DNA of 64,000 bases from Salpingoeca rosetta (Eukaryota > Protista > Choanoflagellata). The translations under genes and the position numbers were made by a program. Shown piece after piece: positions 7,118-13,039 of this stretch (the first letter of the stretch is position 1; each line of letters opens with the position of its first letter). The stretch spans positions 343,623 through 407,622 of the forward strand of contig JAWQFM010000025.1 of the NCBI GenBank assembly GCA_033442325.1, given 5' to 3'. A model generated the notes under the pieces. That model was not told the DNA's origin and did not search any database. It saw nothing but the letters and a program-made list of their open reading frames with translations.

Positions 7118-10100
7118 GCTCAACAACTGCCAGCTCAGGGGTGACAGACTGCAGGCCCTTCTCGATGCACTCCGCGGCAAAACCACCGTTCAATCCATCA
7201 AGTAATGCTGAGCGTTTTGCGATGTGTATTTGGGATACATACACGTGGACATGTCACAAGTGTGTTGCCACCGTCACCCATCAACCATGAACGCTGCTGG
7301 CCCACTCACATGCTTGCAGGCTCTCCTACAACGACCTGGGTCCTGACGGCATGGAAGTGCTTGCTCCAGCGCTCTCCCAACTCAAATCCCTCACATCCCT
7401 TGAGTACGTTTGGCGGTGTATCTGGCGTACATGGAAACTCAGAAATGAGCACCGCCCCCACACAAACACACACACGCACACACACACACACACACACACA
7501 CACACACACACACACACACACACACACACACACACACACACACACACACACACACACACACACACACACACACGCAATCACCCACCCACTCACTCACTCA
7601 CTCACTCACTCACTCACTCACTCACTCACTCACTCACCCACTCACTCACTCACTCACTCACTCACTCACGCACACTCACTCACTCACTCACGCATGCACA
7701 CACACTCACACACTCACTCACGCACGCACACACACTCACTCACGCACGCACACACACACTCACTCACTCACACACTCTCCCTCGCTCACTCACCCACCCA
7801 CACACTCTCTCCCTCACTCACTCACTCACTCACTCACTCACTCACGCACTCACTCACTCACGCACGCACACATACGTTGCAGAGTGGCCAACGACGACAT
7901 TCATGACGCGGGTGTCACGCACATCACAAGTGCGCTGATGAAACTCCCGGGTCTCACACGCCTCAGGTTTGTCCCCGTGCGTGGTGCTTGTGCTGCTTTG
8001 CATCATCGTGTTGCTGACCTGCAAGCGCGTTACCTCCTCTTGCCACATATCCATACCCTGGTGCCTCACACGCTTCCTCAACCCGCTCGCTCGCGCGTTG
8101 ATGCGTATCCAATCAAACGCCCACAGTTTGGATGGTGCTGGCTTATCTGATGCAGGGCTGGAAACCCTGGCAGCGGCACTCCCATATCTACCAGCGTTGA
8201 CACACCTGAGGTGCGTGCCTGCATGCACTAATTGATGCGGCAAATTTGGCTGTGACCATTTCGCTTTGCGCCCATATACACTTCTGAACACACACACACA
8301 CACACACACACACACACGCGCACACACACACACACACACACACACACACACACACACACACACACACACACACACGCATTATAGCATTATGGGTACACTT
8401 GTCCCACACGCACGCCTTTACCACGACTCACAATGCATGTCACGTTACATCTGCTTCGCTCGCAGTCTGACCAAGAACATATTTGGTGATCGTGGCGCGA
8501 CGGCCCTTGCGCACGCTGTCAAGCAGCTGCCATCGCTCTGCGTCTTGCGGTACGGTGTTGCTGCATCACTTAATGGTGTCTGTGTCTGCCTGCCTGCCTC
8601 TGTGTGTGTGTGTGTGTGTGTGCATGTGCGTGTCTGTCTGTCTGTCTGTCTGCATGTGTAGATGGTCGTTTCTGACACTTCACATCTGTTGTGCTTATAA
8701 CTTGGTAGGCTGAGAAACAACAAAGTGGCACAGCAAGGTGCAGCGGCACTGGCCGAAACGTTGCGCACCTCCAAGTCTCTCAATACCCTCGAGTGCGTCT
8801 GCTGGTGCAGCTGTCCTTTGATGTTGTTGTATCCCCTTTCGCCTTTGTGCCACCAACACACACACACACACACACACACACACACACACACACACACACA
8901 CACACACACACACACACACACACANNNNNNNNNNNNNNNNNNNNNNNNNNNNNNNNNNNNNNNNNNNNNNNNNNNNNNNNNNNNNNNNNNNNNNNNNNNN
9001 NNNNNNNNNNNNNNNNNNNNNNNNNNNNNNNNNNNNNNNNNNNNNNNNNNNNNNNNNNNNNNNNNNNNNNNNNNNNNNNNNNNNNNNNNNNNNNNNNNNN
9101 NNNNNNNNNNNNNNNNNNNNNNNNNNNNNNNNNNNNNNNNNNNNNNNNNNNNNNNNNNNNNNNNNNNNNNNNNNNNNNNNNNNNNNNNNNNNNNNNNNNN
9201 NNNNNNNNNNNNNNNNNNNNNNNNNNNNNNNNNNNNNNNNNNNNNNNNNNNNNNNNNNNNNNNNNNNNNNNNNNNNNNNNNNNNNNNNNNNNNNNNNNNN
9301 NNNNNNNNNNNNNNNNNNNNNNNNNNNNNNNNNNNNNNNNNNNNNNNNNNNNNNNNNNNNNNNNNNNNNNNNNNNNNNNNNNNNNNNNNNNNNNNNNNNN
9401 NNNNNNNNNNNNNNNNNNNNNNNNNNNNNNNNNNNNNNNNNNNNNNNNNNNNNNNNNNNNNNNNNNNNNNNNNNNNNNNNNNNNNNNNNNNNNNNNNNNN
9501 NNNNNNNNNNNNNNNNNNNNNNNNNNNNNNNNNNNNNNNNNNNNNNNNNNNNNNNNNNNNNNNNNNNNNNNNNNNNNNNNNNNNNNNNNNNNNNNNNNNN
9601 NNNNNNNNNNNNNNNNNNNNNNNNNNNNNNNNNNNNNNNNNNNNNNNNNNNNNNNNNNNNNNNNNNNNNNNNNNNNNNNNNNNNNNNNNNNNNNNNNNNN
9701 NNNNNNNNNNNNNNNNNNNNNNNNNNNNNNNNNNNNNNNNNNNNNNNNNNNNNNNNNNNNNNNNNNNNNNNNNNNNNNNNNNNNNNNNNNNNNNNNNNNN
9801 NNNNNNNNNNNNNNNNNNNNNNNNNNNNNNNNNNNNNNNNNNNNNNNNNNNNNNNNNNNNNNNNNNNNNNNNNNNNNNNNNNNNNNNNNNNNNNNNNNNN
9901 NNNNNATCGGCAAGACAACGATGATCAGGTCACTGCCGGGCAAAACCGGGTACATCCAGCATCTCATCTACCACGTGATGCAGCCTGCCAACGAGCCAGA
10001 CCGCGCCGAGGAGCGTACACCAGGGATCAAGGTGTGCGATATGGTCATCAGGGACAGGGGCAGCGGTGAAGCTGATGAGGTGGCATCCCTTCGCGTGTAT

Positions 10101-13039
10101 GATTTTGGCGGGCAGCTGGCCTATCACGTGATCCACACGCTGATGATGTCGGACAGGCTTGCCGCCTTTGTTGTCTGCGTGGACCTCTCGCAACGCGAGC
10201 AGCACGTGAAGGAGCGCGCCAACTACTGGCTGCAGTTCATCTGCACGCGCCTGCAACAAGGGATGGCTGCCGCTGCCAACTCCATTGGCGCAGCCCCAAT
10301 GACGGAGGTGAAGCCACGCGTGATCATTGTTGGCACGAAGAAGGACCTCGCGTACAAGAACAATCTGGTGGACGCCGACGGGCATCCCACGTGGGGTAAA
10401 GCCATGATGGCAGACCTACAGGACACGTTTGGCCATATCATCGACATCCACAGCACCCTCATTCGCTTCACGTGCTTCCTCGACAAGGGGCGAAACTTCA
10501 ACGCCCTCCGCCTTGAGCTTGTGCGTCACTGGCGCTGGCTGAAGGACCGTCAGCTTGAGGTGCCAAAAGTGGTGTCAGAGGTCGCCGCCATTCTGAAGAC
10601 CGCACAACTGGAGTGCCCCCTGTGGAAAGTGGGTGACCTGCTCGAGCGCGTCCACAAGAGCAGCGAACACGAGTTTGCCGTCACCGCCGCCCTTCCCGAA
10701 AACATCTTTCATCTCACGTTGCGGTACGTGTTCCACGCATCCCTGCCCGCACGCAGTCGTGTTACGCATCATGTTGTTGTTGTTGTTTCAACAACGTTGC
10801 ATCTTCTTGCCCCCCCCCCAACTTGTCTATGCTTTCGACACCGTACATCATCGTGCGACTTCCCCCTCCTATTGACTACTGACTCACGCAAACATGTTGC
10901 TTTTGTATGCACGCATGCAGGTATCTGCATGCACGTGGCGATCTGCTGTGGTACTACAAACTCCCGTCGCTCGCTGACGTGGTCTTCCTTTCACCCAACT
11001 GGCTCTTGCATGACGTCATGGGCAAGGCATTGCAGCCCAAAGGCGTGGCGTGTGGGGGCCTTCGGCCCAAAAGGGGCGTGGTCAGCTTCAGCGACATTTC
11101 AGCAGCGTTCGAAGGCATCGCAAGTCCCGAATTGGTCATCAGCATCCTCCAGCACGCACTCCTGTGCTTCGAGCTGCCGCAGAATGAGCGGGGCCGGCGC
11201 CGCTTCATGCTTCCGAGCCGCGTGGAAGAGGATGTCGATGTGGACAAGGAGTGGCGACAGCACGAAGATGACGATGACCATGACAACTGGGCCGTGTACG
11301 GAGGGCGCCGCCTGAAAGTGACCGACGACGCACTTGCACTCCCACCTGGGTTCTTCCCACACGTGCAGACCCGATTGCATAGCAAGTTTCGCACGCCCCC
11401 AGACATTTGGAGGAATGCGTTTCGGTGCGAGTGGAGAGGCGTACAGTGCTTTGGCCTCCAGCGTGGTGATCGGGAGGTGGACGTATGGGTACGCGCACGT
11501 GAAGGGGCAACAACACACGCGCTTCCATGTTTGACAAAGGTAAGTTTGTTTGTTTGTTTGTGTGTGTGTGTGTGTGTGTGTGTGTGTGTGCATGTGTGTG
11601 CATGTGTGTGCATGTGTACATGTGTGTGTGTGTGCATGTGTGCATGTGTGTGTGCTTGTGTGTGGTGCACTTATGTCTGAGCCGTGCCTGTTTATGATGC
11701 ACGTCTGCCCGAACCCAAATTTTGCTCTGCCAAGCTGTGCCCCTTTAATGCACCTCTCCCCCGCTGTCTTCCAGCCCGGCTGCCTTCCAAACCCTTCCCC
11801 TCCCCCACCCCTCTTTACTTCCCTCCTCTTCGCTTCTTCTTTCACAGACAGTCCCTCTCTGCCAGTGCTCACTTCATTTCCGCTCTCTCCGTCCCCATCA
11901 CCGAATGACAGGTGTTCTCACTGCTGCAGGAGGAGGCCCGTGGCATTGACAGCCATCACATTGTCCTGAGCCCAAAGCAGCTGAGGCAGCACGTGCCAAA
12001 GCCCATCGGCTATGCATTCGACGCCATACACAATCAACCGCCAAACGAATTTGTCGAGTCCTCGTACCACGACCCAGGACAGTCGGCACTGTCTGAGCGC
12101 GTGTACGACCTGCTGATGCTGCCACCCGAGCGACCCGACTCCGCCATGCCCACGTGGCAGTGCCCCGGGTATGAATGGCACCATCCAAGTTGGCGGCTCG
12201 ACGACACGCTGGATGAGCAGCTCCGCTGGTCTGGCCCGAACGCCCACCGCACGTACACGGCACCCTTGCCACCTAATACCCAACTGTACGAGTGGGTTGA
12301 AAAGCAAATGGCACCAGGAATGTCGCTGTCTCGTGTTGAGGTGACAAAGTCAGCGACCATGCTGCAATTATTCAACGGGCGCCTGGCGCAATGTGCGAGC
12401 CGGCGCGCATCCCCGAACAGCCCACACTTCAACCGCACCTTTGACTATGACCGGGACAAGAAACGCATGGTCGAGCAGCTCAAAGCTCAGTTTGCGCAGA
12501 CTGGTGAAGACGTGGAGCATGTCAACGTCCTCATTGCATGGCACGGGTGCTCTGTGTCCAACATTGACGCCATGGCCAGCGAGGGGCTTGCCAACCTCAG
12601 CAAACCTGCTGACCGCGGCTTCTATGGAGCCGGCATCTACGTGACCCCGCAGGCTGGCTACGCGGCTGGCTACTCAACCCGGCTGCTGCCTGGCACCTGG
12701 GAGGCGCCAAATTCGCGCGGAGAGCACGTGCTTTTGCTGTGTGCTGTCAGCATTGGCCTGGCGCAACCAATCACCAGGCAGGCGGATTACAACGAAGCCA
12801 GCAGGTGTAAATGGTTTGGCGAGCCAATCAAGGATGGATTTGATGCGCGGTATGTGCAGGTGTTGAGTTCCGACAACTTCCAAGCCACACCAACACCGGG
12901 CACGTACAATTTCGAGGAAATTGTCGTGTCGCAGGAGGCCCAGGTTCTGCCCATCGCCAAGGTCTTCGTTAAGGTGAACAGGGACGAGCTTCGCGATTAC
13001 CTCGCATCACCACCCCCCGCGCCAGCGCCAGCGCCTTGA
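7118..13039 (+). CDS. Roco protein: RI-like LRRs - ROC GTPase - COR - PARP-like ADP-ribosyltransferase (5' end and part of the middle lie in gaps)
   Basis: Six 84-nt LRR exons (7118-7201, 7320-7403, 7883-7966, 8127-8210, 8466-8549, 8709-8792), then a gap at 8925-9905. ROC exon to 10723 has GKTT, ERTPGI, YDFGGQ..YH..H and IIVGTKKD. COR exon 10921-11539 has YLHARGDLLWY..VFLSPNWL and LPPGFF. Last exon 11912-13039 has AWHG, GFYGAGIYVT..YAAGYS, LLLCAVSIG and EEIVV..QVLP. The ROC-COR-ART junctions are in frame. The LRR-to-ROC link is inferred across the gap. Confidence 0.85.
8925..9905. other. Assembly gap inside the Roco gene (other gaps: 6440-6987, 13150-13249, ~21467-21862, 24648-24783, 29609-29782)
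   Basis: N runs, mostly flanked by microsatellites. Confidence 0.99.

Follow-up and report, generated by a model that had tools for sequence, protein, structure and literature searches.

PTSG_09169 of Salpingoeca rosetta combines leucine-rich repeats, a Roc-COR module and a PARP-type ADP-ribosyltransferase domain in a candidate receptor-like protein family

Roco proteins have been studied mainly for LRRK2 and Parkinson's disease, and the manner in which the Roc-COR module controls an attached enzyme is still debated. In brown algae, Rocos that carry one leucine-rich repeat (LRR) per exon have been proposed to be immune receptors, and this exon arrangement has been proposed to diversify ligand binding (PMC11378527). 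A eukaryote-wide survey of PARPs treats those of Salpingoeca rosetta and mentions no Roc, COR or LRR (PMC4245714). Here we describe a gene of the choanoflagellate S. rosetta, PTSG_09169, which lies in a 64,000-nucleotide stretch of DNA (hereafter, the window; C25:343623-407622, contig JAWQFM010000025.1 of assembly GCA_033442325.1) and encodes, in this order, an LRR array, Roc, COR-A/COR-B, a linker and a PARP-family ADP-ribosyltransferase (ART). The genome surveyed was the S. rosetta assembly of 55.4 Mb in 68 scaffolds. We read the LRR-Roc-COR-PARP proteins, with somewhat better than even confidence, as a receptor-like and possibly defensive family built on the principle of sensor, switch and effector. 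Full-text literature searches found no publication that describes a Roco-PARP architecture, in agreement with a preliminary description of this DNA, made from the sequence alone, which knew of no characterised Roco-PARP. In public databases, the genes of this type are entered as 'hypothetical protein' or 'Poly [ADP-ribose] polymerase'.

The segment at 9906-13039 of the window, on the plus strand, is the 3′ two-thirds of one genuine gene. When its three coding pieces were spliced, they yielded an open frame of 854 codons, which is identical to the annotated PTSG_09169 protein (XP_004989423; UniProt F2UMX5, 849 amino acids; exact protein match) except for five N-terminal residues before the first Met of the latter. 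An assembly gap ends one base before position 9906, concealing the junction between the LRRs and Roc, and the annotated protein is truncated at this gap. The motifs that the preliminary description had pointed out (those of ROC and COR, and WHG, GAGIYVT and NFEEIVV) all lay where it had placed them, as did the three coding pieces. The parts of the gene are as follows, in positions of the window; confidence of models is given as the predicted local distance difference test (pLDDT).

7118-7201, 7320-7403, 7883-7966, 8127-8210, 8466-8549 and 8709-8792, plus strand: six one-LRR exons of 84 nucleotides each, from a scan for AG-84 nucleotides-GT segments with open frames
8925-9905, no strand: assembly gap of 981 N, hiding the last LRRs, the first Roc strand and half of the P-loop
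9906-10723, plus strand: exon A, Roc (GKTT remnant of G1; DFGGQ, G3; GTKKD, G4) and the start of COR-A, from Pfam
GT10724 to AG10920, plus strand: intron 1 (GT..AG, 197 nucleotides), which shifts the reading frame, from splice-site reading
10921-11539, plus strand: exon B, the remainder of COR-A and a COR-B-like region, from Pfam and fold
GT11540 to AG11911, plus strand: intron 2 (GT..AG, 372 nucleotides), with in-frame stops and a GT microsatellite inside, from splice-site reading
11912-13036, plus strand, stop codon at 13037-13039: exon C, linker and PARP domain, from Pfam and fold
11912-12136, plus strand: linker, last-exon residues 1-75, from a low-confidence model (pLDDT 46-71)
12137-13006, plus strand: PARP-type ART domain, from Pfam and fold
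13007-13039, plus strand: Pro/Ala-rich tail and TGA stop (13037-13039), from sequence

The GT microsatellite of intron 2 spans 11583-11670. It belongs to a set of long GT/CA microsatellites (11550-11680, 13060-13400 and 8270-8920) that occupy introns and flanks and coincide with assembly gaps.

That the Roc-COR and PARP exons form one fused gene is, in our judgement, very likely, on the basis of the annotation, the conservation among paralogs and the fused orthologs. The splice sites of the public gene model are those of our spliced model of the window, which argues that the fusion is real. In addition, S. rosetta has 12 further loci at which a homologous PARP exon is preceded, on the same strand and at a distance of 1.7-2.4 kb, by a Roc exon; identity there is 51-60%. 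In most of these paralog loci the boundary between exons A and B falls at query residue 272/273, and the donor GT of intron 2 has kept its codon position in every one of the 11 loci where that exon is retained. The frame relation of the exons flanking intron 2 varies from locus to locus, so that only splicing can join them. An artefact of annotation, by which the PARP exon would belong to a gene or transcript of its own that follows a Roco gene, could draw on an in-frame Met at last-exon residue 79, just ahead of the folded domain, and on the occurrence of the same PARP subfamily as short stand-alone proteins. However, exon order (12 loci) and intron position (11 loci) have been conserved at 50-60% identity while the frames differ. 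Moreover, in the window copy and in the three paralog loci with a match to the motif LLQEEARGID, conservation of the coding sequence sets in at the acceptor itself, 75 residues ahead of the folded domain. Since fused proteins also exist in other species, one of them an open reading frame (ORF) derived from mRNA, we consider a separate transcript very improbable.

Long annotated members of the family support the same architecture. The full-length paralog PTSG_13043 has Pfam matches to LRR_6, Roc, COR-A and PARP, and further long members are PTSG_09285, 08728, 09099, 10355 and 05784. Among relatives in other organisms, a 1516-residue LRR-Roc-COR-PARP-like protein of Barroeca monosierra aligns with the family over Roc-COR at an independent E value of 2.6e-29, with a PARP-like domain following; it ends in a 265-residue C-terminal extension that has no Pfam match. 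An ORF of 1233 residues in the transcriptome of Salpingoeca infusionum, like B. monosierra a choanoflagellate, combines COR-A (45.7 bits) with this PARP domain at 33% identity, and another fused relative, of 1408 residues, combines Roc (45.5 bits) with this PARP domain. Thus, the earlier claim that Roc-COR and PARP are joined in one gene through two GT-AG introns is borne out by the annotation, the 12 paralog loci and the fused relatives. We also compared the gene with contig sets by shared words. Those of 22-32 Mb (X5 and X7-X11) contain 0.81-0.89 of the words of the gene, X9-X11 sharing 0.81 against 0.82 expected for exons only, and, among the matches listed, intron 1 was present in genome-sized sets and not in X5 or X7-X11. 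As the nature of these contig sets is only presumed, the pattern is a weak hint of spliced RNA.

The switch part of the protein is that of a Roco. Immediately behind the gap, exon A begins with IGKTT, which is what is left of the P-loop; DFGGQ and GTKKD come next, and the exon matches Pfam Roc at 30 bits against a cut-off of 27. The corresponding motifs are conserved in the paralogs as GDYGIGK[TS], DFGGQ and GTK[RK]D, with G1 complete there and cut by the gap in the window copy, where GKTT is left. A profile built from the Roc-COR family matched LRRK2 at E 8.6e-16 and the Chlorobium tepidum Roco at E 3e-7. Pfam COR-B had no match in the Roco-PARP family, and COR-B is supported by fold only. 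Roc-COR and PARP were each recovered by fold as well as by sequence, far beyond chance. The protein therefore has a Ras-like Roc G domain with G1, G3 and G4, and a COR directly C-terminal of it, as expected for a Roco. Pfam scans of the window pieces and of the paralogs gave no protein kinase family, which distinguishes the protein from LRRK-type kinases. Nor did Pfam scans give a match to NACHT or NB-ARC, the nucleoside triphosphatases of NLR/STAND proteins; the switch here is Roc-COR.

Upstream of the gap, each of the 84-nucleotide exons at 7118-8792 encodes one 28-residue LRR of the ribonuclease-inhibitor type. Given that full-length paralogs carry LRR_6 arrays at that position, we assign these six exons to the PTSG_09169 gene as its predicted N-terminal sensor part, and the LRRs that had been expected upstream of Roc-COR-PARP are present both here and in those paralogs. 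Pfam scored the single exons weakly because the exon boundaries are out of register with the repeat: one gave an LRR_6 match (16.4 bits) and the other five of the six were blank. A match to PF27087 is precomputed on all LRR-bearing paralogs. The six exons share one phase and each is flanked by AG and GT, and the shared phase would allow a repeat to be gained by duplication, lost or skipped with the frame kept intact.

The C-terminal domain was characterized by profile, alignment and structural modelling. Pfam PARP matched exon C at 37.1 bits (cut-off, 26.7), covering profile positions 37-127 only. When the last exon was used as a single sequence against the sequences of the PDB, it gave E values of 0.25-2 only, and a family profile was needed. 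A search of 1.84 billion representative sequences returned 522 relatives of the last exon at E up to 0.001, 85 of which make up the alignment (A1) that underlies the conservation counts, the profile and the AlphaFold model below. The A1 profile matched ZAP, PARP15, PARP14, tankyrase, PARP10, PARP16 and PARP12 at E 1e-5 to 1e-2. The AlphaFold model of the last exon reached a pLDDT of 87.1 and a predicted template-modelling score of 0.80, with residues 76-365 above 90. The ART fold claimed previously for this domain was thus confirmed by fold and by the model, and the claim of a full H-Y-E triad likewise held: the domain contains His211 (12542-12544, in the WHG at 12539-12547), Tyr243 (12638-12640, in GAGIYVT) and Glu336 (12917-12919). 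Fold and triad together place it in the PARP/ARTD family. Tyr243 and Glu336 do not vary in A1; Gly212, Tyr254 and others are almost invariant, and 76 of the 85 relatives have His211. The H-Y-E triad is retained by each of the 12 paralogs. Glu336, the second E of NFEEIVV and invariant in the family, stands in the model at the head of strand 334-339, which is followed by a hairpin, QVLPIAKVFVKV, at 345-355. We take it to occupy the position of the catalytic Glu988 of PARP1, an equivalence drawn from the PARP1 sequence and from motif spacing rather than from residue-level superposition. Poly(ADP-ribosyl)ation cannot be concluded from an H-Y-E triad alone: PARP3 and PARP4, which have it, are mono-transferases. 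The paralog family is probably enzymatically active, whereas for the PTSG_09169 copy itself we put predicted activity at an even chance, for reasons given below.

The PARP subfamily to which this domain belongs also occurs behind other modules. It is fused elsewhere to LRRK2-like ARM repeats, WD40, NHL-EGF, discoidin and ANF-receptor modules, and, in further proteins, to FG-GAP, RRM, PH, actin-related and DUF4116 modules; named sources of such fusion proteins include Mastigamoeba, Gymnodinium and Pterocystis. The subfamily behaves, as far as domain composition can tell, as a mobile output domain placed behind repeat or ligand-binding modules. In three relatives, the modules in front of it are of extracellular type (ANF receptor; NHL with laminin EGF; discoidin), an arrangement that suggests receptor proteins with a predicted intracellular ART output.

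The Roco-PARP family of S. rosetta comprises about 13 copies, namely that of the window and those at the 12 further loci. Across the annotated paralogs, mean pairwise identity was 72% in Roc and 72% in PARP, 66% in COR, 55% in the N-terminus with the LRRs and 53% in the linker, and the number of LRRs differs among paralogs. At the level of sequence, both enzymatic domains, Roc and PARP, are shown by this comparison to be under selection, with clear constraint. Eleven of the 13 loci are no more than 65 kb away from a scaffold end (binomial probability about 1e-7 under uniform placement); the end of C24 truncates one, and another lies 6 kb from the start of C27.

Rocos other than the Roco-PARPs are numerous in the same genome, which has at least 50 COR-A loci, many of them also near scaffold ends. 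One of these genes, on the minus strand (COR-A, 55 bits), lies about 5 kb before the start of the window, in C25:333700-343600; a 345-residue frame downstream of it had no Pfam match at E 0.001. A classical Roco gene at C13:1702500-1712400 (COR-A at 69.7 bits in the extracted frame and 72.7 bits in the genome scan, with a weak COR-B match) has the Roco-PARP paralog at C13:1698657-1701841 as a neighbour 5.5 kb away, and so both types of Roco cluster. The preliminary description had raised the idea of sister Rocos with swapped C-terminal effectors. This was upheld in part: two of the eight sister Rocos sampled have a TIR_2 match after COR-B, and the scores (22.8 and 23.5 bits) are under the cut-off of 28. 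A search of PDB sequences with one TIR-like region of a sister Roco found nothing. Another observation among the eight was a SAM_2 match in the next frame downstream of one sister Roco. Directly downstream of PTSG_09169, a long open frame at 13946-15388 on the plus strand encodes a tandem array of C2H2 zinc fingers.

We favor the receptor-like reading because the LRRs are variable and encoded one per exon, the switch and effector are conserved, many copies lie near scaffold ends and sister Rocos may carry other outputs. By analogy with other Roco proteins, the LRRs would keep the protein autoinhibited. The GTP/GDP state of Roc-COR would then alter its conformation or oligomeric state and thereby free the C-terminal output domain, and the output would be ADP-ribosylation, dependent on nicotinamide adenine dinucleotide (NAD+), of the protein itself or of a target, instead of phosphorylation. 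The idea put forward earlier, that Roc-COR dimerises in response to a ligand, is at odds with the best-studied bacterial Roco, in which GTP reportedly drives monomerisation (PMC5714945, PMC11052575). The further proposals of the preliminary description, an immune role, depletion of NAD+ and control by GTP, are likewise conjectural. A more specific version of the receptor-like reading, in which LRR sensors diversified by exon shuffling feed into interchangeable effectors that consume NAD+, namely a PARP-type ART in the 13-copy family and TIR in sister Rocos, is one that we regard as possible but doubtful.

Several findings weigh against the receptor-like reading. With regard to the switch, Pfam COR-A matched exon B at 25.7 bits, under its cut-off of 35.3; the Roc-COR model of the window copy is of moderate confidence (pLDDT 65.5); and in the S. 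infusionum ORF neither a Roc nor an LRR was detected. With regard to genomic position, neither of the two scaffold ends inspected, those of C24 and C27, has telomere (TTAGGG) repeats, and the loci near scaffold ends may reflect block duplication, hence not independent events. The literature searches under gene or UniProt identifiers retrieved no publication on the genes of the PTSG_09169 family. With regard to the output, in the B. monosierra relative (PARP-like residues 883-1251) Met-Ser replaces the His-Gly of the triad; this protein is probably a pseudo-enzyme, and its loss of the triad His means that loss of activity does occur in this lineage. Finally, PTSG_09169 is an outlier within its own family: it is only 50-56% identical to the other paralogs, and stands apart in every region. 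The Tyr at position 285, present in 81 of the 85 relatives, is Gln in the window copy (codon 12764-12766), and the His at position 313, present in 79 of the 85, is Arg (codon 12848-12850), both of which set this copy alone among the paralogs. Thus, the description of the domain as catalytically intact stands for the H-Y-E triad but not beyond it.

These features raise the alternative that PTSG_09169 is an impaired or decaying paralog, serving as a pseudo-enzyme, regulator or decoy, while the other members are active enzymes. The two substitutions, the divergence in every domain and the triad loss in the B. monosierra relative are all in its favor, and so is the position of PTSG_09169, which, like just one other copy, does not lie near a scaffold end. 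On the other hand, its frame is open through three exons, its splice sites are canonical and its H-Y-E triad is intact; the model of its PARP domain is very confident; and Arg313 is shared with the S. infusionum protein. Taking both sides together, we consider impairment of this copy rather unlikely.

A different question is what a functional family would do, and here too there is evidence on the opposing side. Characterised Rocos act in cytoskeletal and membrane-traffic signalling and are not known to act in immunity, LRRK2 and Dictyostelium Roco2 serving trafficking and cytoskeletal control (e.g. PMC3128523). The same protein might therefore be an ordinary endogenous signalling enzyme, which would respond to an internal or environmental cue by ADP-ribosylating host targets, with no recognition of non-self; the settings meant are the cytoskeleton, membrane traffic, and colony and mating responses to bacterial cues. 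Fusions of the PARP subfamily to actin-related, PH, RRM and ARM modules fit such a role, as does the clear constraint on PARP and Roc, and Perina et al. connect one PARP of S. rosetta, which contains an actin domain, with the cytoskeleton (PMC4245714). By contrast, for a housekeeping function it would be unusual to find about 13 paralogs, sharing 50-70% identity and for the most part close to scaffold ends, whose variable LRRs are encoded on shuffle-ready exons. Endogenous signalling of this kind strikes us as somewhat unlikely. Within the receptor-like reading, a biological role in defence or in sensing non-self is itself a tentative suggestion, drawn from circumstantial traits of the family and from the brown-algal precedent, and we would not call it probable.

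A Roco whose output is an ADP-ribosyltransferase would offer an orthogonal and easily assayed read-out of the Roc-COR switch, in a host, S. rosetta, that is amenable to gene knock-outs. Should the family prove to sense non-self, it would represent a third design of nucleotide-switch receptor beside NLRs and the bacterial STAND systems, and PARP- and TIR-type NAD+ effectors would belong to the immune toolkit that preceded animals.

Compared with described Rocos, such as LRRK1/LRRK2, the C. tepidum Roco and Methanosarcina barkeri Roco2, PTSG_09169 lacks kinase, death and WD40 domains and has a PARP-type ART as its output. Compared with described PARPs, its domain is only 16-19% identical to those of PARP15, PARP12, PARP14, ZAP, tankyrase 1/2 and PARP4 and represents a protist subfamily of its own, in which YP[IV][TS]R..DY and D.H are additional conserved motifs and residues 148-191 form a helical insert; WWE, macro, ankyrin-SAM, WGR and helical regulatory domains are all absent from the protein. 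It resembles LRRC9-type proteins, for which a defence role has been proposed, in joining LRRs to a domain of the ART superfamily, but LRRC9 is of an unrelated family, in which a divergent and probably inactive ART is nested between LRRs and a GTPase is absent (PMC7955679). The brown-algal LRR-ROCOs are similar in being an expanded LRR-Roc-COR family with each LRR on its own symmetric phase-2 exon (PMC11378527), whereas their LRR exons are 72 nucleotides long, against 84 in PTSG_09169, their LRRs are of a different type and they end after COR with no effector domain. With NLR/STAND receptors the family shares the logic of a repeat sensor, a nucleotide switch and an effector, and lineage-specific expansions with swappable effectors. 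Its switch, however, is a Ras-like Roc GTPase with COR and not a NACHT/NB-ARC STAND ATPase, which makes the likeness one of functional analogy, not of membership. PTSG_09169 is thus an uncharacterised variant that combines two well-known families, Roco and PARP.

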